A stretch of 62,401 nt of DNA from Dimorphilus gyrociliatus (lineage: Eukaryota > Animalia > Annelida). How positions within the stretch are numbered: the stretch's first letter is position 1; every line of letters starts with the position of its first letter. The position numbers and the translations under genes were made by a program. The stretch covers positions 1,048,217-1,110,617 of the forward strand of contig CAJFCJ010000014.1 of NCBI GenBank assembly GCA_904063045.1, given 5' to 3'. Of the stretch, positions 15,701-37,103 are shown piece by piece. Under the pieces are notes generated by a model. That model was not told the origin of the DNA. It searched no databases and saw only the letters and a list, made by a program, of their open reading frames with translations.

Positions 15701-18700
15701 CGTTGAGTTTGGAAGATTAATAAACGACGGTGGTTCTTGAATGTCTGTCACGTTTACGGTTATATTCCAATCGACGCTTAATCCAGCCTTATCCGAAACG
15801 ACAACTTGTAGCTTGTGAGACGAAATTGCTTCGTAATTTAGGCCTGACGTTGTTATCTTTCCGTCAGCGTCTATAGAGAAGAAACCTCCACTAGGAATGG
15901 TTGTCAAATTGAAATATAAGATATCCCCAAAGTCTGAATCATTAGCCGTTACAGATATAATTTGGCCAATAAAATTTTCGTTAACAGCAATACTGAGTGG
16001 GAGGGACGTCACGAGAACAGGTGCTTCATTAATATCAATAACATTTATTGTTACAGTTGAGGTGTAATTAAGAGTACCGTCGCTAACATATACCTCCAGA
16101 ACGTATTGAACTCTTTCCTCGTAATTAGGGCTTTTAATAGTAACTAATTTACCATCCGCACTCACATTGAATGAATGAAAATTGTCTATTAACCCATACG
16201 TGACAGCATCTCCATCGTCGTCTGTCGACATCAAAGTATATAAGACGATTCCATTAGGCGTGTTTTCCGAAACGTTTAAAATTGTTGGCGCATTAGTTAG
16301 TACAGGGCGCTCATTAGTGTCTTCTATATTCACTGTCACATTCAGTGTCACGTAATTGTCTTCAGAGTCTTTTATGTTAATTTCAACTATGTATAAAGCT
16401 TGTTGCTCAAAATCAAACGCTGCAGTGGTCTTTAGTGTTCCTGTAAGAAAAAAGAAGAAAGGAGTAGAGAACAAGTGAATTTGATTGTCGAATAGGAAGT
16501 AATCCAAAGAGGGGAAGAGGCTATGAGGAATATATTTGAAGAAAAAGATAGAAAGATAGCCTAAAGTGTTTTAAATACCTGAAGAGTCCACGGTAAATGA
16601 ACTTGTGTTTGGAAAAACGCTGATAATTGTGTATGACAAGGGATCACTTTCTGGATCGGATGCGTTCAGTTGAAGTAGGAAACCCAAAGTATTTTCCTTA
16701 ATTGAGCATTGTTGAGTGGTTCCAGTGTAAACTGGCTTTTCATTAACGTTCAGAATTTGAATAGTTAAATTAGCGGATGCTTGGAGAACGGTGTCGTTGA
16801 CAGAGATTGTTAGCCAATATTCCGTCGTTGTTTCGTAATCGAGGGTGGAACCAGGAGCAAGCTTTATCGAACCCGTATTCGAATCGATAAGGAAAAATCC
16901 CATGACGGATTGTTTCTCTAAAGTGAAGTATAGTGCATCTCCTTCTTCATCTGAAGCTGAGACGCTGTAGATGGTATTAGAAGTATAATTCTCATAGATT
17001 ATAAGCGTCTTAGGTAGATTTAACAATAGAGGAGATTCGTTAACGTCGCTTATATTGACGTATAGAATTTTACTCTGTCTAAGGGATGTTGTATCCGTAG
17101 CAACAATTTCCAATGCATAGCGTTTAACAGTTTCGTAGTCTAAATTTGGATTAGAATTGAGCTTTACAATTCCACTACCAGTTATTGTAAAAGGCCCAGC
17201 AGACGGTTGAGTCCAATTTAGGCTGAAAGTAATAGAATCCCCAGTGTCCTCGTCTGAAGCTAAGACCGTGAGTAAATCGGCGGGCCCTGTATGATTCTCA
17301 TAAACAACGACCGTTGACGGTAAATTGTTTATGTTAGGCGTCTCTTGCTCATCTGTCACGTTTATCGTTAGCTGTTTTGAGTCTGTTAAGGTTCCGTCGC
17401 TAGCTTCAATAGTAATTATGTACTGCTTCACGCTTTCATAGTTTAAATTAGTGGGTGTTGAAAGTAAAATATACCCGGAGGCATTTACTGAAAATGCTCC
17501 ATTAGCAGGAACAATCGAGCTTAACGTAAATGTTATAGCGTCGTTATCCGGTTCTTGCACATCAACTTGAATTAGAGCAGTTGCCTGAGAGAACTCGCTT
17601 ATTGTCAAACTTGTCGGCAAGTTATTAATTGATGGAGTTTCGTTGACATCCGTTACATTAACTTGTAGTAGAGCGTAGCTTATTAACGAACCATCACTTG
17701 CTGAGACGTTCAGGTAATATTCGCTGACAGTCTCGTAATCTAGATTAGGATTTGATGCCAAAATGATTACACCGGAAGTTGGATTAATAGAAAATGCCAC
17801 GGATGTAGGCTGGACCGATGCTAATCCATATGTAATCACGTCTCCTTCCGGATCAGTGCAAGCAACAGTATGCAAATTAAGGGATGCTGTCCTACTTTCA
17901 TCTACAGAAACAACTGTAGGCAAATTTGTGAACAACGGAGCGTCGTTAATTATCTGAAATTGACAAATTAAGGATATTATAATTATATTTTATAGTTAAA
18001 CAGCTGTAAATAAACGCTTACATTTACGTAAATGGTAAATGTTTGGACGTCTGCCAAAACTCCATCAGAAGCCGTCACATTTAACTGATATACGGGGGTA
18101 GTAACGCCGTCCAAACTCGGATTTGCATTCAGGCTAACTTGTCCTATATATATTTGAAAGTTCATGATTGATTATGATTCAATTTAATATTATACAATAA
18201 TAAATCATGTGAATCATACAAACCGCTAGGATTTATTTGAAATGGAGCTGAAGGTGGATTTGACACAATACTATAAGTTAATGAATTTCCCTCCGGTTCG
18301 GTGACCGTTACAGTGAGTAAAATCCTCGTTAGCGTTTCATCATCCTTTATTAAAGTTAATATACTTGAACCGCTACTCTTAAAAAGCGACGAGAAAAAAA
18401 GATATAAAACTTACGTTGACCGTTGCATTTGCTGGTAAATTTGTAATTATTGGCTTTTCGTTAACATTCGTCACAGTAATACCAATGATAGAGGGTCCAA
18501 CACTAACCGAACCGTCGCTAATTGATACTTGAATGTTATAATTTATTTGAGTCTCAAAATCCAAAGGCGCGTTGACTTTTATTTGACCAGACGACGGATC
18601 AATAGTAAATGGTGTCCCGCCAACAATTGAAAAAGTCAACGTATCGCCAAGATTACCATCCGACGCAGTAAGCGTATATAGTACTGTATTAGTCGCTGCG

Positions 18701-20025
18701 TCCTCGGGTACACTTAGAGACGATCCGGGTAGATTATCAATAGTTGGCGGTACTTGAACTTCAGTTATATAAACCGAATATATTCCTTTAGTAGTATTGG
18801 TTCCATCGGATACGTCAATGGTTAAATTGTACAACTTGGTAACATCGTAATCGAATCCTGGACTCGAAGATACGGATATAACGCCGGCTGAAAGACAATA
18901 TAATTCAAATATAATAGTTCGTTAGGGAAATGGAAAGATTGGACGAATAGTAATAAATAAATGATAAAAATTTTCTGACTTGTTGGATGTATTGAAAGAG
19001 CTGCATTTGTCGGTGAGGACGTCATTGAGAATATGACAGCATCACCGTCTTCATCGGAAGCCATAACTGTAAATAGGTTTTGAGCTGTCGCGTGATTTTC
19101 AGCCAAAAAAATACTATCCGGTAAATTCGTAAAAACAGGAGGATCGTTGTCGTCTACAATTGTTACAGTAAAGGAGAAAACAAACATATGCCCTCCTGGG
19201 TCCTGTGCCAACAATGTAGCCGAAAAAGGACCTTTGTTTGCCGTTGCTTCAAAATTAATGGTTGGTCCAATAAATCTCATTTCTTGAGCTAGAAAATACA
19301 TTTTCTTTAGATTGAAAGTTAATAAGAAAAGTAAAACTCCAAATTTACTTACAAGCCGTATCAAAAGAAATCCAAGTTGGTTGCGAAGGAACCCAGAATT
19401 CAGAGAAAATCATAGTTAAACCTTCTGGATCTTCAATATCAAATTTCTTTATGACGTAAATAGGATCTGTATTTTCTTTCACATTAGCAATGTAAGTCCT
19501 AATGGGATTTTCAAACGAAATCTTTCATTCTAGCTGATTCTATGGAAAATTTTAAAAGAAAACTTACGGATAAGCATTTGTCGGATCGGATTGGGATCGT
19601 GGAGATTCATCAATATCAACTTCTAGGGAAACAGGGCCGGCCGTTCCACCACCAGAGTCAAAAAGTAAAATGTTCAAAGTTACGGTTGCAGTTGCCGCAG
19701 CACTTATTCCCGCACCAGTATAGGTTACAACTCCGGTTGAGATGTCTACATTGAAATTTGGCACAAGCGGAGTATCGAATGCGAAGAAGAGTGTATCGCC
19801 ATCAACGTCATTAGCAGTTATTGTAAAGATTGTAATTGGTGTAGGAGTTCCTTTAGCGTTTTCAGCCAGATATCCAGTTGCAGGTATGTTAGTAAATGTC
19901 GGATCTTTAATAAAAGATGTGAAGGTAAACTGTAATATTTCTAGTTAATCTAAACGTTCCTTACCTGCTCCAAAAGTTGTCGAGAAGAAGAATAATTGAA
20001 TGATTAGTAATCTAATCATTTCCAT
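12732..20025 (-). CDS. Large non-classical cadherin-related protein (signal peptide, roughly 15 EC repeats, membrane-adjacent domain, S/T stalk, TM, short cytoplasmic tail)
   Basis: Signal peptide MEMIRLLIIQLFFFSTTFGA from 20025. Many LDYE, DxD and (D/N)VNE.P/DDNDHRP cadherin motifs across the ORFs at 13731-19764. TM ITLSVLCFVFVLFVIIICLTIYYFAC; tail ends ...GLTQLDS*. No classical catenin-binding motif seen. The repeat count is an estimate. Confidence 0.88.
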
Positions 20026-25325: not shown

Positions 25326-26330
25326 CTATTGCATTATAGTCGTCGGCGTCGGCGTCGTTGTCGGCGTCGTCATCTTTGTCGTCGTCGTCGTCGTTATTTT
25401 GGGGGAATCGACTATTCGAATTGGACTAAGTGTCCGTTGAGTAGAGTCAATAGGTTTAAATAATAAAGGTGGTGTTGGTCCACCAGATCTATTTTCTATT
25501 GGCATAGATGGAATGGTTGCTGAAAATGGATTAGGAATCCTTCGAGGTTTCGATAATTCTTCTGAAGCCATTTGTTCGGCAGGTAATTTCATTGGAGGAC
25601 CTAATGGGGTTGATTCTCTCTGTTTTTCAAATATAAATGATATTAATTGTGTTTCCTTCTCTAACACACTGGTTTATCTGTTTCATACCTCGAGAAAATT
25701 AACAAATAATTGAGAAAGAGATTGATCAAGAGGTGGCGCTGAAGCTGCCCTTAGGGGAGTTGAAGGAGGTGTTGGAGCACCTTGAGATGAGGGCTTAGGC
25801 TTATTTCCAAACCATCCTTTTAGCCATCCCGAATGCTGTTGATTCGCTCTTAGCTGTTGATGCAAGAAAATTAAACAAAGCCTCGGACCTACACGATTTA
25901 TTATTGTACCTGTTCCAGTTCGGCTTGCGTAAAGCCCAAGATTTTACCAATTAATAATAAAACTTCGGGTTGCTTCGAGGCAGGAGTATGCAAGTAGCCT
26001 AATATCAAATTCTTTACAACAGTTCTAAAAAAGCAAAGTATTTTGTTGTAAATAGAACAATTTCTCGATCTAAGAGTATTAGATTATATATATATAGATC
26101 TATATATAAGCTTACTTACTTATCAACCCTTGCATCCGAAGAAATTTGTAGTCTTGCTATTTCCTCTTCCGCATGTTGTAACATCCTCTCTCGATTTTGC
26201 ACTAGATAATTTGTTGGAGGAGAAAAAAAGAGAAAACTATGATTAAATTATGTTTTCGTATCATTTAAACTTAAAAAGAAAAGAAATAACTTGGTACGGT
26301 TTATCAACGTATACAAATAAATTCATTTTA

Positions 26331-26384
<54 letters not shown>

Positions 26385-29300
26385 CATATTTATGTTAAAA
26401 AAAGAAAAGAAAATATATATATATATATAGGAATATTATAAATATACACATTATATATATTTACATATATTACACCGAAATTTTTGACCAAAATACACCT
26501 TCAAAGGCATTTAGACACAGCTGTAACTTTGTCCAAGGTATACATTCGGTATAACATATATGTATATATATATATATATACAGTATAAATATATATATAT
26601 ATTAATATATAAAACGTATACTTTGTATTTATCATCTAAATAAAAATATAAACGATAAGTTGTTATTTGCCTCTTTTGAGAGTCAAAAAAAAAAGAATTC
26701 TTTTTTTTTGAAGTGTTAACATGAAACACTCGCATTAGAAGATGTAAGAAAAAGAGGAATGAGAGCAGCGCACCAGATACTGAAACTGAATAGCAATCAG
26801 TACCTGATGTAATACTCACATCCCAATTCTTTGTTAGAATCGTCACAGGTGTTAGAAATGTATTTGACTCCTTATTACTACTTTTTTTTACTTTTATTTC
26901 CTCTCTTTTTTATTCTCTAGTTTATCTCTTTCTCTCTATCTTAATCAACCAATCAATCTTTATCTCAATTTTTAATATATTACTCTTAATTTTAATATTA
27001 CTGAAGTACTAATTATCTTCTCCTTACTCTCTCTCTCGTATTACCATACCCTCCCTCTCAGTCCTTTTCTTTCTCACACAAAAATCCACATGACGTTTAG
27101 TTGATAAATATAGAACACTTAAAATTCGCGTCTATTGAAAGATTTAAGTCAATTGAATACTTGAGCATCCTGCATACTATTCAAGTGCAGATATACATCT
27201 GCAAGCTTTTGTTAATTTAACCTACGAAATTACGCAGTTTACAAAATATACATATATATATATATATATACTACATATTAACACGCTTACATAGCTAGGT
27301 TTATACTAATTGTGAATAGTAATACTTTTCCTTATACGAACAAACATTCCTCAAAGACTAGAATTATTAATATTTGAATTAAAAATATGAAGAAAAAAAA
27401 AACAATACAAAAAGACAAAAAAAAAGAAGACTATTGACATAAACAGTAAAGAAAAAAACCAAAAGCATTTAATTTCTTATTAAAAGAAAACTGTTGTTTT
27501 TTTTTTTCTTTTTACTTTTTAAATTGTTTCTATTAAAATAAAATAAAAAAAAAGAAAAACATAAAAAAGAGGGATGAGTGAAACGAAAGAAAAAAAAAGT
27601 AATAAAAAAACAAATATTGTTAACCTAATGTAAGAATATTGCACGATGCAGCACAATGCCAATAAAAAAACGAGAGCGTGTTAGATGAAAAAGGTGCTAA
27701 AATTCATGTAATCTCAGCGAGTAGCGCGATAAGGGCAAGGTTTTTCGAGTCACGTTTACCAGCTGAGATTATACGAACATGCACACGTACGTCACACATT
27801 TCTAGTTAGTTAGGGTCAATTTTTATCTCTAATATTTTCGTATATATGTATAATTCTAAAAATACATACATACTTTCATTCATTCATACATGACTATATA
27901 TTTAACCATAAATACATATAAATATATATAAATAGATTTATATATATTTATAAATAGATATGTGTAAATAGATACTTATAATATATACATGTATGTTTTT
28001 TTCTATATTAAGAATATGCTAGAAGTATTAGAAATAATAAAAAAATAAATAATAATAAAACAACAATAACAACAAAAGTTACAACACTCTTAGTTGTTGA
28101 TAGAATGGAATAATGAGGGTTGTCTTTAAGGGTAGAGGGATGTGGTGATAAATAAACAACAAAAAAATTAGGAATAATAATGAGAATAAAGAACAAACTA
28201 GATAAAAAAAAAATATTATATTAAGCAAGCAGAAACACTACACCAGAGCCAGATATCAGTCGAAATTCTGAGTTTTGCCTTACTTGCCACTTACGTCTCA
28301 GAATTACCGGCTGATATTAGGCGCAGATGAGGAAGATTTTTTGGTAAGGATGATGCAACAAAAGCCAAAAAAAATATATATATTTATATTTATACATATC
28401 TATATATATATATATATATAGATATAATCAGCCATGCACCGTGCATCAAAAACAAAAAAAAAAAGGATTGTTTTTCTGGTGAAATGGGGAGGTGGAGGTG
28501 GAGGTGGAGGAGGAAAATATATCCATGCAAAGAAAAAAGAAAAAAATTTTTCCTTTCTTTTTTTTTTTGTTCTCAAATTAAATTTTTGTTAAGAGAAAAT
28601 TAAAAAAAAAATAACACCAAAATAATAATAATAATGATAAAACTATTAATTAAACCGTTCACCACAAATGAAAACAATTGTGTAAGTGTGATAATAAAAA
28701 TTTTTTATAATCAATAAAATTTGTAAAAACTTCCTACCTTCCTCCTTTAATGCCGAAATTGCCTCCGATTTTCTATCGAGTTGCTCGCTTAATCGACGAG
28801 CCGCTTCTAAACCTTCTCTTGCTTCTTCTAATTCGCTTTCCAGCCTTCTAATGTGGTCCTTGTAGTGTTCGACATCGTGTCGGTAACGTTTTACCTCCTC
28901 GTAGGCTTTTGATTCGCCATCTGCTCTTTCAGCTTCGAACTGCTCGAGAACTAACTGTAGATTCTTCACTGCGGTCACGTGTTGCTCCAGCTGACTCCTC
29001 AAATTCGTATTCTGGACATAGGCCTCATCACGCTGCCTAGATATTTCACTAATCTGCAGACGAAGCTGTTTTACCGTCGAATCCGCAGCCGATTTCGTAC
29101 CCTCGACGGTTTTTAATCGGTCATTTGCGGTCTTTTCTGCTAATTCAAGCTTCTCTCTTAAAGCAGCTTCTCTCTGACTAGAAAGAATAGAATCTTGAGT
29201 ATGACCGTCTTCCATTTGTATCAAATGAGCTCGTAAACGTTCCAACTCGGACTGTAATCTCATTTCGCGATTTTTCAAAGTTGTAACTTCGTTTTTACTC

Positions 29301-32300
29301 TGCTCCAAAGAGTTTGTTAAATCTGCGTTTTTTCTGATAACTTTATCTCTTTCCTGAGTTACACCCTTCACATGACCTTCCCAAGCGGATTCCCTTTCAT
29401 CATCTTTTTTGACGGACTCTAGCCTGGCTTTACAATCATTTAACTCCAACTGATATGACGTTGCTTTTTGTCTTAACTCAATTATTTCTGACTGAAGTGT
29501 ACACGCCCGATTCAAAGCCTCATCCTTCTCAGCCTTAGCCAAGTCCCTTTCTGAAGTTGCATTCTCCAAATCAATAAGTGTAGATTCTAACGACACTTTT
29601 GTGCTAAGTAATTGCTCCTCTAGTTTTTCCTGTTGACTTTGCAAAGAGGCCATGTGACTTTGTAATTGCGATTCGGTCGCATCGCGTTCCGCTAGCAATT
29701 TTTCAAGCTTGTTTATTGTTAGGCGTTTTTCCTGTAACGTAAAACGTGTCATGTCAAGAGAGTAATAACGAGATTACAAGCATTACTCACCTGTACGTCG
29801 TCTTCAAGATTATTAGCGTCAACGTTGTTTACATCAATGTCTATTTTCTTTTTTAGCTCCTGTGCACATTCTTCTTGCTGTAAGCAAACTTGCCTTAATT
29901 CACTAACATCTAAAGTCGCTTTAGCTAACGCATCAGATTTCTCTTCAAAGCTCTTTCTCAACTCGACTAATTCGCCTTGCAGTTTTGAAACAGTATTACT
30001 CAATCTAACAACTTCCTGATGATAACCAACACTTTCTGCATGTTTCTGTTGTAATGCATTAGTTAAAACGGCTCTATCCTGAGTAAGTTGGGCTAATTGG
30101 TGAGCAGTTTGTAGATCTTGGCCAGAACTTTGTAATAAATCTCCGAGACTATCGCACTTTTGCCTTAACATTTCTAATTCTTGATCTCGTTCTCTTATTA
30201 GTAGGCTTAGTTTTTGTATAGTATCTTTCGACATCTCATTATCACTCTCTATTGTCGAAGAATCGAATTTTACCCTAACATTCCCAGCATTTTCCAGTTT
30301 TTTCTTTAAATCGGCTATACTATCTAATAATTTAGCATTTTCTCTTTTTAATTGAGCATTTTCTCTTGATTTATCATTAAGTACAGCAGACACTTGCTCT
30401 TTCTCCGAAAGCGCTTGAGACAATTGCTGCTTGGAATCTGCTAATTGCATAGTCGCCGTTTGAAAAGCGGCTCGAACGGAAGGTAGCGTTGTCTGTAATT
30501 CATCCTTTTCTCTCTTAAGGGCTTCTATAGTCTTCTTTAAATTGTCAGAATTATCATCATCTGCTTGACCTTCAACAATCCGCTCATCTACGTCATCATT
30601 ATTCACCTTTAGATCTTTATTTTTTATACCGTTTTTCATAAGCCCCAATTCTTCATCTCTCTTCTCTAATTTTTCTACTAATTCATCGTTTAATGATTTT
30701 TGAATGGATAATTCTTGAGCAAGTTGCAATGCCTTCCTATTCCTATCTTCCAAAATAACCATTTCAGCACGAATTTTCTCAAAATCAGCCATTTTGTTAT
30801 CGTACTCAAACTTGAGTTGCTCAAAAGCAATTTCAGCCAATTTTTGATTTTTTAAAGCTACGTCTAAAGCATTCTGACTCTCCTCTAACCGACCTTTTAA
30901 TGAACATAACTCAGGATCTGGATTAGCTAAACTTTCTGCCTCATTTAATCGAGCTCTTAACATTTCTAATTCTAGCTGAACGCTTTCGTTAATTTTCATA
31001 GTATTGTCTTCATCTAACTTTTGTATTATATCATTAACTTTTTCCTCACATGCAGAGATGCGATTATTTAATTCTGTCTCTGAACTAGGATGATTATTGA
31101 TTTTGACCAGTTCAACGTTAGTAGTTTCTTTATTATTTTCTAGGGAATGTAAGGCTGCGTACCGATTTTCGACCTCTTGTAAAAGCTGATGTAAAGTAAT
31201 AACAGGGTAATTTACAAGGTTAATATTTCAATTGATTCTTAGAAAATTCATTACCTTTTCAAGTCGAGAAATTTCTTGCTCCTTTTTCTCATTTCCTAAA
31301 AGTTCTTTTATTTCTGTTATTGCCTCTTCAATTTTTATACTTTCGTCTAAATTTTCCGCCATTTGGGAATTAAGACTTTTAATTGCTTTTTCCTTTTCTT
31401 TTAGATCATCTCTTTGCTTCACAAGGACATCTTCTAGAGCTTTCTTTTCGTTTTCAACAACGTTACGATACAATTCAAATTCGTTAACTTGTTGTTTTAG
31501 ACGTTCAACCTCTGACTCTTGAAGACCGGGATCATTTTCCCACGCCAAAGAGTCAGTGCTCTTAGCATCATCGTCCACCCTTTCCTTGTCGGCTGAACTC
31601 TCGTCCTTCGTAAATGCATTTAGTATTTTGCGCGTTAGATCTTGAGATCTTTTATCACCCAAATCTTCCATAAGGCGCCCGGTATCAAGAGTCGATCTTT
31701 CTAGAGCGTCCATTATTGCAATTAAATCTTTCTCCAATTGTTCTTCCTAGTAGAAAAGAAAAAAATTAATAATTTTCCAAATGGCTATTTTTGAAAGAAA
31801 GGAACTTGTTCAACGACCGAGGATACACTTAAGAATAAGATAAGACAGTGGAAAAACCATTACTCCGTCGTTCAAGATTATTACCTGGCATTTAGTTTTC
31901 AACAATTGGGCGGTTAGAGCCGATCTCTCGTGAAGAAACGTATTTGCTCGGATTTGATTGTGAAGGCTTACGGCACGTTTGGTTTTATCCAATTCCGTCA
32001 TAAAAGACGCTCTCAATTCCTGCATATTTATACAATCCGCTATATTGATTGTAGCTGACCTTAAAGGCGACTTCACACAAAAGAGAGCGCAAACAATCTT
32101 TTTTTTATATGTTTTTTCAAAAACATGCATAACCAAAACGGGAAAGAGACATGAAGGGAATATTTATTGGCAAAAGAACAAAGAGTTTACCTGGCCACTC
32201 TCAACATTCTCTAAAAGTTTCATCTTGCAAACGTCTAATTCGTCGCGTAATGTTGCCGCCTCTAAATCGGTATTTTCGCATCGTCTATCTAAACCTATAC

Positions 32301-35300
32301 TCGAAAAAAGAGATAAAAAAGAATATCAATTAATAAACACGTTATCAGTCTATTCATATCCGGCAAGGTCGTTGCTGACGAACCGTCTGGTACTTACCAT
32401 CGCAACATTCTTCCAGTTGGATAATTCTCTGATTGGCGCTTCTGAGCTCCTCTTGTAATCTTTCTGATTGCTTTTTAAGCGACTCTTTTTCTATATCTTC
32501 AAAACTGCTTTTATCTAATAGGAAAAAAGTAGACATCGAACTAGATAAATGTTTCAAAGTTATAATGATTATCTTACCGTCCACTGCTGGTTGGGATCTG
32601 TGTAACCTTTCTAAAGCTTGAAGTTCTCGTTCATGGTGTTCCCTTTCGGCCGAAAGCGCCACCTCCAATGACTGAATAAAAAAAGAAATGATTTTGTTGT
32701 AAAAATAGAAAGTGTGCGCATATATATATATATATATATATCACACTTAATAAAAAGGAAACTTTGTTCAAGTGTAAATAAATTAAAAAAAAATGCTTAC
32801 TTTAACTTTATTCTGGAGTACGGCAGTGACATTGTAGCCGTCTTCATCCTGTGGAGATAGTGGAAAGAATGGCAATCTATCAACAGCAGAAATAAAATAA
32901 TAATACCTAGAGCCGACCGCTCAAGAGGAGAGTAAATACAACGCGGCCGTTCATATCTCGCAAACACTACTTATCATTCGTCGTATCTTATCAGCTTCAG
33001 GTATTGCCAAGCTGACTGGTATTGTTTAAGTTTTTTTTCTCTCCTTTTATATTCTACATTACACTTAAACTATCTAATTTAATTCTTTAAATACCGCTCG
33101 CTCTCAATAGATACAAAGAAGACAAGTTAAGGGAGATATGTTGTTGAGATACGAATGAGTAGAGATGTAGGAGTGATATGATAGTTGTAAGCGAGAGAAG
33201 GAAGGGGGAGGAGTGACGGGCGAGGGGGGTGAAAGCTTTGGCAAACTATCCGCAGCTCAAGTAGTCAGCTGCGCCTTGAAGCCATATGCCGCGTATTATG
33301 TTTGTTCAATCACGAATATGGGCGAAGATAAGCTACGCACGTGTTCAAAATCTGCACTACACATTTCTCTTCTCGTCGAGGGTGGCGGAAAGGGAGGGAG
33401 GGAGGGGACGGGAGGGAATAAGCAAGATGAAGCAATACATAAATGGGAATTATGGCCAAATAATTGCTTTGATATGTTCAAATTCAATTAATAGATATGT
33501 TGATGTAGGATAACGGGAAATGAAAGATAATTGCCTATTATAGAAAAAAAGTTATCGGGCGATACTAACCCGCTCATTTGCTGACAGTTCATTCTTCAGT
33601 CGGTCGCACTGATTCTGTAATCGTCTAACTTCAGATCGCAACCTGTTGATTTCCCTCTGGCTGTTGATCACGTCCGATATATCGTCCTCGTCATCGCCTG
33701 AAATCGATCAATTCGTTATTTCTACGTTTTCTTTCTGCCGGGAAAGCCGTATAACAACGACGCTAACGAGAACTTAATCTTTTAACGGGACGGTCTAAGA
33801 AACAAAGCAACTCCAAAGTTACCTTTCAATGCAAACCCAAACGGCGGAAATGCATTGGCGCGCTGTGTCGTTTCATACTTTGTTCACTTCCTATCCTTAT
33901 CCAATAGCCGTCTGCCACGTATCAGGCCGTATGAATATTTAATAACGAGGAGCATCTCGTCGTTAATCAGGCCTACTCTATCTCAAAATAACCTGCTAGC
34001 ATATATATGCTACGGTCGACTGATATATATCCGTCCCTTCTATAAATACGTACAAAAAAATGCTTCAGTGTATTTCGTCGCCGCCTAAACACTCGAATAT
34101 GCCGACAGATTAGAAGCCCAAGTTAAACATTGAACTTTAGATCAAACTTTCCAATGTCTACATACACTTAAAAGGCCGCCACACGGTACCGACCTAACGG
34201 AAACTTTACCGTCTTAAGGAACGATCTGAACGACAGCTGTCCGCCGCAAAAAAATATTTCATCGATATCTTGCCGTTTTAAAACAGCTGTCAGATCTATC
34301 TCGTTCAATATATTGTATATAATCTACATCACACACGTATGAACAGACGAACATCCACATATACCTAGATAAACAATACGCAATATGTAATGTTTAAATA
34401 TAAGAGTTTAAGCATATTCAACTAATATACACGAATACATAGTATACATACTATACTATATATATAGTATATCAAATATCGAATGTTATTATGATTATAG
34501 ATTCAGTATATATATGTAAATATGTATATATATATTGAGAATATCTGGACGCCATATATAAAAATTTCTTCGAATTATCCCACGTGCAAGAATTCGACAT
34601 GTTTCTCTCATTTTACTCTTCTCTATTCCCCACCACATATTTTATTTTCTTGTATATTCTTAAATATTTTTCACATCTTCAACAATAGATACGATAAAAG
34701 AGAGATATATGTCTAGATAGATAGATAGATAGAGAATAAGATAGAAAGTATTCTCTTTCAGCATTAGAACACCCGGAACTAGAATCGACTTTGACAACTG
34801 AAAGTAAACATGGCAAACGATCCGCAGTCAATTTTTAGCACGTGTTACGCGATTGGAATAGAATATTAAAGGCGCTCAAAATTTAATTAAAAACAATGAA
34901 AAGAGAGAATTAATAACCAAAACACAAAAAAAAGAAAAGAAAAAATAGCTGACAAAACAAGAAGAAAAAAAAATATTTCTACTAACCTAAAGACAATGAG
35001 GTTGGACCAGATTCTGAAATCGAGTGGGTGAAGTCGCTCTCTAAGTCGTTCTGCTTTTCCTTCAACAATACGATTTCGGCCTGTCGTTATTTGAAATCTG
35101 ACCGTTAGTGACTAACGCTGAATAGGTTCATTTTGAAAAAAAATATTTCTGCCTTATCTTACTCAAGCTTAATTGATAAGGATAATTCATTTCCTTTTCA
35201 AAAACGGTGGAGTACGACGTTACTACTCAAAGTTCTCTTATATCTAATCTAGAATTTTTATCTTATCATTAAATTTAAAATATTTTTGAGAGACGTTCTC

Positions 35301-36118
35301 CCACAAACGCATATAATATACATATATATTGATGAGTCGAATTAGAGAAAATTCAAACTATCTATACAAGATAGATGTACACAAATAAAAAGACCTATGT
35401 CTATGTATAAAAAGTTTGTAATTAAATATCAATCTATAAATAGAATAGTAATCAGCGCGAAGCCGAAATAAAGATTTTCTAACTTAAAAATTATTACCGA
35501 TAGAAAAAAATTCTAATAAGTTTTATAACTTATCAGCAAGCTTCACGACTTATCGACTATCACGTCTTGGACTCGAAACTCCTGATTAGCAACTGGTGCA
35601 TTTTTTTCCCTTGTGGAGATAACACATATACCATAAAATACGAATTGAAAAACTTATGGCCTCAGAGGCTGAGAGAGTACGTGCAAAATTTTTGCGAAGA
35701 ACAATAAAAAATAGGAACACGAGAAAGAATGAGAAAAGGCAGAAATATTTTATATTATCAATCTTGATAGTTTTTTTTTTTTAAAGAATAAAACACTGTC
35801 TCTAACCTCTTTTTTACTCAAAAGGGATTGATATCTTAAAGCTACATTCTTAACTTCTAATTCAGCAGATTCCAATTTACTGCGAAGTTCTCCATTCTCT
35901 TCCTCTATTCTATTCACCTGCCAAAGTAGATAGTGTTATCATCAACAAACTAAGATTGTCGTTCACGAATGGAAAATATATCATTGTGATAGTTAAATTA
36001 CACAATCAATTACATTTATGTACGTGAGCCAAAAGTTTATATCTATATCTATCTGTATGTATATATGGATGTATATTAGTGTATAAATACCTAAAACATC
36101 TAATTACATAATATATAG

Positions 36119-36161
<43 letters not shown>

Positions 36162-37103
36162 CATAGATATTGACTAAAACAATTCACTACCCCGCCACTC
36201 CCTATGAGAGTCTAACATATTGAAAATGTTGCTGATAACGACATAAATCATCATCGAATTGTAATCTTTCTACATGTCATTCGGTCCATTAAACCTATAA
36301 CTGTTATCATCCGGCGACCTATACTACTATCATCGTTTTATAAGGTAACTACTAATTGAAACGGTAGATGGCAGTAGCAAGATTTAAGATTAAATAATAT
36401 ATATACAGTATATATATGTAAAGGATATCAAACCTCCAACTTCTGAGAAGACGATTGAGCCTCCAAATCGGAAATATGTTTCTTAGCAAGCCGAAGCTCT
36501 GACTGATAATCTATAATGAAATATAAAAAGAAATCAGTTCAAACTGTTCGTTCAGTAGGAGAATTAGAATAAAAAATGTCAATATATATAGTTTTCAATA
36601 TTTTAGAGTAATTTCAAAAATTCTCAACGATTAATTGATAAATTATCATATTTTCTTTCATATGTTTTTTTATTATATAGTAGATCTTAGTTTATCTCTA
36701 GTTAGGTGTTAAATAACCACGTTGTATATGAGTCAACAACGCAAACCATATATGAATTTAGTTAAGTAACGTCACTTTTTTAAACCTTCTATCTTAACAA
36801 AAATGTGTCTGGTACTTTGAAAGTTACGCTTTTCTTTGTTTATTGTTTTCGCAAGCTTAAAGCAATTGTTGTATTGACTTATTGTAATGATTAGATTGTA
36901 TAAATAGAAATATGTAATGTTGTGCTGGATATCAGTTATTAACTATTTGTAAAAATTGGAATTTTTGAAGCAATCGCGATTAACTGTACGAAAATATTTG
37001 CATTACCATCAACTTCCTCTGTTCCTTCTGTTAGCACCTCCTTAGTAAAATTAGAAATTTGGCCAGTAATCTGCCCAACACGATCGCCGAACCAAGAAGA
37101 CAT
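25326..37103 (-). CDS. TRIP11: Golgin GMAP-210 / thyroid receptor-interacting protein 11, multi-exon
   Basis: N-terminus MSSWFGDRVGQITGQISNFTKEVLTEGTEEVD (ATG 37103) matches the TRIP11 N-terminal motif. Long coiled-coil exons span 28740-33700. GRAB domain RVDK/TVVKNLILGYLHTPASKQPEVLLLIGKILGFTQAELEQ and GRAB-associated WLKGWFG...SLSQLFVNFLE/REST lie at 25620-26200. Confidence 0.93.
26756..26825 (-). ncRNA. mir-12: pre-miRNA, miR-12 family (mature 5p 26818-26797)
   Basis: Minus strand reads UGAGUAUUACAUCAGGUACUGA, matching miR-12. It folds back on ucaguaucuggugcgcugcucuca. Intronic and in host-gene sense. Confidence 0.93.
27703..27778 (-). ncRNA. mir-216a: pre-miRNA, miR-216a/miR-304 family (mature 5p 27771-27750)
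   Basis: Minus strand UAAUCUCAGCUGGUAAACGUGA (miR-216a-like, seed AAUCUCA) pairs with the 3' arm aucgcgcuacucgcugagauua. Confidence 0.92.
28245..28325 (-). ncRNA. mir-216b: pre-miRNA, miR-216b/miR-283 family (mature 5p 28319-28297)
   Basis: Minus strand UAAUAUCAGCCGGUAAUUCUGAG pairs almost perfectly with cucagaauuucgacugauaucu across a 24-nt loop. Seed AAUAUCA as in miR-216b/283. Confidence 0.9.

Follow-up and report, generated by a model that had tools for sequence, protein, structure and literature searches.

The linkage of microRNAs of the 216, 12 and 217 families with the gene TRIP11 has been catalogued by Liu et al. (2025, Mol Biol Evol; PMC11848845), whose survey covers 34 species and lists three sense-intronic associations, 216~trip11 (Bilateria), 12~trip11 (Protostomia) and 217~trip11 (Chordata). 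According to the same survey, lamprey retains Mir-216/217 in trip11, and jawed vertebrates have lost that host copy (PMC11848845). In Drosophila melanogaster, miR-283 is nested in Gmap, the TRIP11 orthologue (PMC12714197). The locus described here belongs to a stretch of 62,401 nucleotides (nt) of the annelid Dimorphilus gyrociliatus (contig CAJFCJ010000014.1, positions 1,048,217 to 1,110,617), hereafter the window, from the start of which positions are counted. The window very probably holds the ancestral intronic microRNA cluster of TRIP11/Gmap, made of a 283/216b-type hairpin, a 216a/304-type hairpin and miR-12, in that order, and presumably co-transcribed with its host. The arrangement was read correctly but is already known, because the 216~trip11, 12~trip11 and 217~trip11 linkages are published by Liu et al. 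(2025; PMC11848845), with exactly the same association of microRNAs and host and the same sense-intronic placement. In its accessible part, however, that catalogue operates at the level of genes, whereas it is shown here that nine species agree in the position and phase of the intron and that the orthologous intron is empty in echinoderms. Both results, the orthology at intron level and the contrast with echinoderms, add modestly to what was known.

Three fold-back hairpins in host sense, noticed at 26756-28325 in an earlier note on this DNA, are present on the minus strand, which is that of TRIP11, as indicated by Rfam searches, folding and a scan of the intron (Table 1). At curated thresholds, Rfam yielded a single match in the whole window, that of mir-283 with hairpin 1 (52.1 bits for a gathering score of 50). 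A permissive Rfam scan of positions 26000-29000 matched hairpin 2 with mir-216 (46.2 bits, E 2.4e-7) and hairpin 3 with mir-12 (43.4 bits, E 3.6e-7), both over the full length of the model, and E ranged from 6e-9 to 4e-7 over the three hairpin models on these 3 kb. The minimum free energies (MFE) of hairpins 1, 2 and 3 on the minus strand are -33.0, -32.6 and -37.3 kcal/mol, with z-scores of -3.45, -3.64 and -5.07, respectively, and all three beat 200 of 200 shuffles, none of which folds equally well. When the intron outside 26432-26472 was scanned with RNAfold in 90-nt segments, these three were the sole stable hairpins not made of (TA)n, the others having a guanine-plus-cytosine (GC) content of at most 0.14. 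No fourth or otherwise concealed hairpin was found in the intron by the permissive Rfam scan, the 90-nt RNAfold scan or sequence comparison. The hairpins do not stem from the antisense strand, an origin rejected on two grounds: the plus-strand sequences lose 15-25 bits in Rfam score, and that of the miR-12 region folds poorly (z -0.92).

Table 1. Features of the TRIP11 locus and of its intronic microRNA cluster in the window
Feature	Positions	Strand	Basis or sequence
TRIP11/GMAP-210 (Gmap orthologue), from ATG at 37103 to end of last open frame	25329..37103 (approximate)	(-)	tblastn, phmmer
N-terminal exon MSSWFGDRVGQITGQISNFTKEVLTEGTEEV..., conserved amphipathic GMAP-210 N-terminus	37005..37103 (3' end approximate)	(-)	Open reading frame and tblastn
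Coiled-coil exon ending ...SEAISALKEE plus first base G of split Val codon	28738..29731	(-)	Ends of orthologous exons
MicroRNA-bearing intron, 2,536 nt, GT..AG, phase 1, between ...ALKEE and VQNRER...	26202..28737	(-)	Splice sites
Hairpin 1, miR-283/miR-216b type, MIR-216 family	28236..28335	(-)	Rfam RF00747
Hairpin 1, 5p arm	28319-28297	(-)	UAAUAUCAGCCGGUAAUUCUGAG, seed AAUAUCA
Hairpin 2, miR-216a/miR-304 type, MIR-216 family	27701..27779	(-)	Rfam RF00654
Hairpin 2, 5p arm	27771-27750	(-)	UAAUCUCAGCUGGUAAACGUGA, seed AAUCUCA
Hairpin 3, miR-12	26756..26824	(-)	Rfam RF00751
Hairpin 3, 5p arm	26818-26796	(-)	UGAGUAUUACAUCAGGUACUGAU, seed GAGUAUU
Short exon (V)QNRERMLQHAEEEIARLQISSDARVDK, leading into GRAB domain	26120..26201	(-)	57% identity to Patella exon VQLREKSLKLAEEEIRKLTSSTEAKVDK
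GRAB-domain exon TVVKNLILGYLHTPASKQPEVLLLIGKILGFTQAELEQ	25910..26024	(-)	Pfam PF10375

The host had been named TRIP11/Gmap in the earlier note, and homology searches agree with this. When the exon query 28751-29752 was searched with phmmer against 1.84 billion representative proteins, the best matches were proteins of ~1,500-2,500 residues, aligned ~230 residues before their C-termini and annotated as thyroid receptor-interacting protein 11; they come from Haliotis, Mya, Mytilus, Plakobranchus, Lingula and Octopus, as well as from Centruroides, Nymphon, Branchiostoma, a caecilian and a sea urchin. By tblastn, the TRIP11 proteins of Lingula, Patella and Haliotis are collinear with the window from 37097 to ~25431, and the N-terminal exon (37097-37011) aligns with Lingula TRIP11 over 29 residues at 72% identity. 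The end of the coiled-coil exon aligns with ...QALKEE in Lingula, ...QALRDE in Patella and ...AVLRDE in the fly. The GRAB exon matches Pfam PF10375 over profile positions 8-48 of 49 (E 9.1e-5, 22.6 bits); its score lies under the cut-off of 26 because the preceding intron splits the domain. Judging from the coiled coil, the N-terminal amphipathic motif, the C-terminal GRAB domain and the orthologues among the top matches, the host gene is TRIP11/GMAP-210.

How far the arrangement is shared was determined with the TRIP11 loci of eight other species, in each of which hairpins and flanking exons were located. At gathering level, Rfam recovered only the mir-216 of Patella and one Capitella hairpin from these loci; its thresholds are too strict for these clades, and fuzzy matching and nhmmer profiles were therefore applied to the orthologous loci. 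Profiles built without Capitella recover the Capitella hairpins at E 1e-15 to 8e-10. In six of the eight species, the cluster occupies exactly this intron, with phase, order and host-sense orientation all unchanged. In Patella caerulea, the intron is 3,484 nt long and carries a 283-type hairpin, a 216-type hairpin and miR-12; in Tribolium castaneum (4,592 nt) the three are of the 283, 216/304 and 12 types, and in Drosophila navojoa (3,304 nt) they are miR-283, miR-304 and miR-12. The introns of Lingula anatina (2,283 nt) and Capitella teleta (1,302 nt) have an extra 216-type hairpin ahead of the 283-type, 216-type and miR-12 hairpins, and that of Branchiostoma lanceolatum (2,154 nt) has miR-216 followed by miR-217. 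The remaining two species, the echinoderms Asterias amurensis (518 nt, L006:25166-25683) and Anneissia japonica (406 nt, L008:20394-20799), have no hairpins in the intron, and searches of the whole TRIP11 loci of this sea star and this crinoid with nhmmer returned no 216-, 283-, 12- or 217-like hairpin, with nothing at E <1. Echinoderm TRIP11 has thus retained the orthologous phase-1 intron in a short, hairpin-free form. In all eight species and in the window, the intron is of phase 1 and interrupts the gene at the same site: the upstream exon closes with ...L(K/R/H)(D/E/S)E and one further base, and the downstream exon is short and ends in ...(V/I)(D/E)K.

The cluster of Drosophila Gmap resembles that of Dimorphilus in its families (mir-283, mir-304 and mir-12), their order, their host sense and the phase-1 intron, which runs from ...LRDE to the V... 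exon before GRAB. The order 283/304/12 in a Gmap intron, which the earlier note had cited, was seen in D. navojoa, taken as a proxy for D. melanogaster, with hairpins at 27556, 29413 and 29996 in the intron 26988-30291 of locus L004. That note had also named a fly cluster in a non-homologous Gmap intron as a result that would refute its reading; the D. navojoa cluster is instead in the homologous phase-1 intron, since strand, order and exact intron are common to D. navojoa, Tribolium, Patella, Lingula and Capitella. The two systems differ in that hairpin 2 of Dimorphilus keeps a 216a-like arm, UAAUCUCAGCUGG..., whereas the fly mir-304 has diverged to UAAUCUCAAUUUG..., and in the length of the intron, which is 2.5 kb in Dimorphilus and 3.3 kb in the D. 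navojoa proxy. With Capitella and Lingula, Dimorphilus has in common the intron, the strand and the succession of 283-type, 216-type and miR-12 hairpins; in contrast, their extra leading 216-type hairpin is absent from Dimorphilus, and Capitella has an intron of half the length. This fourth hairpin (5p UAAUCUC..UGGUAAUUCAGAG) comes first in the Capitella and Lingula clusters (L007:11267-11333 and L003:33728-33800, respectively). No trace of it was found in the window at 28737-28336, nor in Patella, and one 216 paralogue therefore seems to have been lost in Dimorphilus. Amphioxus shares the orthologous TRIP11 intron and the host sense of its miR-216 and miR-217, but just one 216-type hairpin was found there. 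In human, the miR-216/217 cluster lies at 2p16, away from TRIP11. The proposal that host, strand and order have been conserved since the protostome ancestor holds for the protostomes, but it understates the depth of the association, miR-216 and miR-217 of amphioxus being in the same intron.

The 5p arms bear out the assignment to the miR-216b/283, miR-216a/304 and miR-12 families, with 18-23 of 22-23 nt matching orthologues. The 283-type arm has 20-21 of 23 nt in common with Patella, Lingula, fly and beetle, and the 216-type arm 18-19 of 22 nt with its orthologues overall, its first 16 nt being identical to those of Patella and Lingula (16/16) and nearly so to those of amphioxus (15/16). The miR-12 arm is identical to that of Lingula over 23/23 nt and matches those of Patella, D. 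navojoa and Tribolium at 22/23. Double-sided compensatory pairs, as detected by RNAalifold, make up 10/29, 10/26 and 14/31 in hairpins 1, 2 and 3, respectively, mainly in the basal stems. Across species, the loops are highly variable and the imperfect stems are conserved, a distribution over arm, stem and loop that is the usual mark of a processed pri-microRNA. One or more of the hairpins might instead be decaying relics that have lost processing, a reading in keeping with the lack in Dimorphilus of the fourth 216-type hairpin of Capitella and Lingula, with no remnant detected, and with the divergence of the 216a-type arm at its 3' end. Such decay is highly improbable, however, given that the seeds are intact in all three hairpins, that the miR-12 arm is unchanged relative to Lingula, that the stems are intact with strong MFE, and that the 283-type arm has a single change, of U to C, by which a C-G pair takes the place of G-U or A-U.

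If the three hairpins follow the route of canonical intronic microRNAs, they would be transcribed in host sense within the TRIP11 pre-mRNA, Drosha/DGCR8 would excise them as ~70-nt hairpins from the 2.5-kb intron, and Dicer would trim the excised products; the 5p arms, whose seeds are AAUAUCA, AAUCUCA and GAGUAUU, would presumably be the mature arms loaded into Argonaute. Several points speak against a functional cluster driven by its host. Two of the three hairpins score under the Rfam gathering value (mir-216, 46.2 against 53.5; mir-12, 43.4 against 55). The orthologous hairpins of Lingula are likewise under the gathering thresholds, and the threshold is therefore strict for this clade. MirGeneDB 3.0 has Dimorphilus as a genome-only species, with no small-RNA reads existing, and host-coupled transcription is an assumption, as an internal promoter may be present in the 402 nt upstream of hairpin 1. 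The conserved microRNAs of Dimorphilus are presumably already in MirGeneDB 3.0; the genome paper of the species does not mention microRNAs (PMC7854359). RNA (metatranscriptome) runs contain up to 65% of the words sampled from the flanking exons and 6-8% of those from 26700-28400, figures that denote the presence of words only, the reads being unplaced.

An internal promoter of this kind would make the hairpins real microRNA genes that are merely nested in TRIP11, in line with the situation in jawed vertebrates, where miR-216/217 are apart from TRIP11. The 402 nt between the 5' splice site and hairpin 1 are non-coding and could accommodate it. The acquisition of host independence by intragenic microRNAs is described by Liu et al. 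(2025; PMC11848845), and in the fly depletion of Gmap did not mimic the miR-283 knockout phenotype (PMC12714197). Nevertheless, placement in host sense in one and the same intron has been kept in seven lineages for more than 500 million years, which is what dependence on host transcription would lead one to expect, and autonomous transcription is considered unlikely. Under the preferred reading, that of a cluster co-transcribed with TRIP11, the partnership between microRNAs and host has lasted for over half a billion years with even the intron and its splice phase unchanged, and it persists in an annelid whose genome is among the smallest of its phylum. The TRIP11 cluster is useful as an anchor for annotation and as a textbook case, and it leaves existing knowledge unchanged.

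The last hairpin of the cluster raises the question of the relationship between miR-12 and miR-217. The miR-217 hairpin of amphioxus (L002:19498-19584) aligns with miR-12 hairpins on both arms, and in the 5p core 16 of 19 nt are identical between the two, a value that none of 1,000 shuffled cores equals in the amphioxus intron. The mir-12 model of Rfam is the second-best family on the amphioxus miR-217 hairpin (22 bits, E 0.23); in the window, the mir-217 model gave no match at E <=10. Both amphioxus miR-217 and protostome miR-12 are last in the same TRIP11 intron. The mature 5' ends of miR-12 and miR-217 are shifted by 4 nt relative to each other, hence their seeds differ. Because of the two-arm alignment, the 16/19 core and the common last position in the same intron, a single origin is suggested, and it is somewhat favored that protostome miR-12 and chordate miR-217 represent one ancient locus whose mature 5' end has shifted. 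If so, the cluster of 216-type and 12/217-type hairpins would date to the bilaterian ancestor together with its host intron. This would depart from the catalogue of Liu et al. (2025), which has MIR-12 arise in Protostomia and MIR-217 in Chordata (PMC11848845). No statement that miR-12 equals miR-217 was found in searchable papers, and the equivalence may be known to specialists, for whom the link might be of interest, as might the comparison of intron lengths with and without the cluster.

The earlier note had given the length of the host intron, between the ...LKEE exon and the exon leading into GRAB, as about 2.5 kb, in agreement with the 2,536 nt measured, and had called it unusually long. 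This is true relative to its neighbors, as the adjacent TRIP11 introns measure 59, 95 and 56 nt, with one more of ~69 nt by hand count; the 95-nt intron is the one between the short exon 26201-26120 and the GRAB exon. It is not, however, the only long intron of the gene, ~3.3 kb of other intron sequence being found in the 5' part, between 37097-37011 and 33698-33591, where ~120 residues are encoded and the borders are inexact. In host sense, the 5' splice site is followed by 402 nt, hairpin 1, 457 nt, hairpin 2, 877 nt, hairpin 3 and 554 nt up to the 3' splice site, and these spacers consist of (TA)n and poly-A/T with a GC content of 0.04-0.14, that of the window being ~0.33. Published figures for the D. 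gyrociliatus genome are 32% GC, a median intron of 66 base pairs and a size of 74 megabases.

The earlier note had credited the cluster with keeping this intron from being compacted, a proposal that is only partly supported. The intron is 1.3-4.6 kb long in every species with the cluster and 406 and 518 nt in the two echinoderms without it, but Capitella accommodates four hairpins in 1,302 nt, the spacers are AT-rich and TRIP11 has other long introns. The cluster thus accounts for a floor of ~1 kb and not for the full 2.5 kb. The length might be due mainly to neutral AT-rich filler or to other regulatory content, with the microRNAs imposing a small minimum size only. In favor of this, the three hairpins of the compact Dimorphilus genome, smaller than that of Capitella, take up 2,536 nt, about twice what the four of Capitella occupy, the spacers are of low complexity, and the ~3.3 kb of 5' intron sequence in TRIP11 are without Rfam match. 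Moreover, Dimorphilus introns that bear open-chromatin peaks are larger than others (PMC7854359). On the other hand, the two species devoid of the cluster have the shortest introns, all carriers being at 1.3 kb or above, and the introns adjacent to it in TRIP11 reach only 56-95 nt. An origin of most of the length in filler or other regulatory content is therefore a tenable possibility, though not the favored one, next to a cluster that sets the lower limit.

Before hairpin 1, at 28455-28500 on the minus strand, a purine-rich (GGAGGT)n-like repeat of no evident function stands amid poly-A/T and (TA)n. The 5' third of TRIP11 (33000-37000, minus strand) comprises ~3-4 kb of intron sequence, of which 33001-34000 is relatively GC-rich (0.42), and its long introns gave no Rfam match at gathering level. 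Near TRIP11, at 17983-19800 on the minus strand, open frames with cadherin-repeat-like motifs of the DVNDNxP type (VTNVNEKPIITNLP, IVDDNDPPVFTNLP) probably belong to a large cadherin or protocadherin gene.

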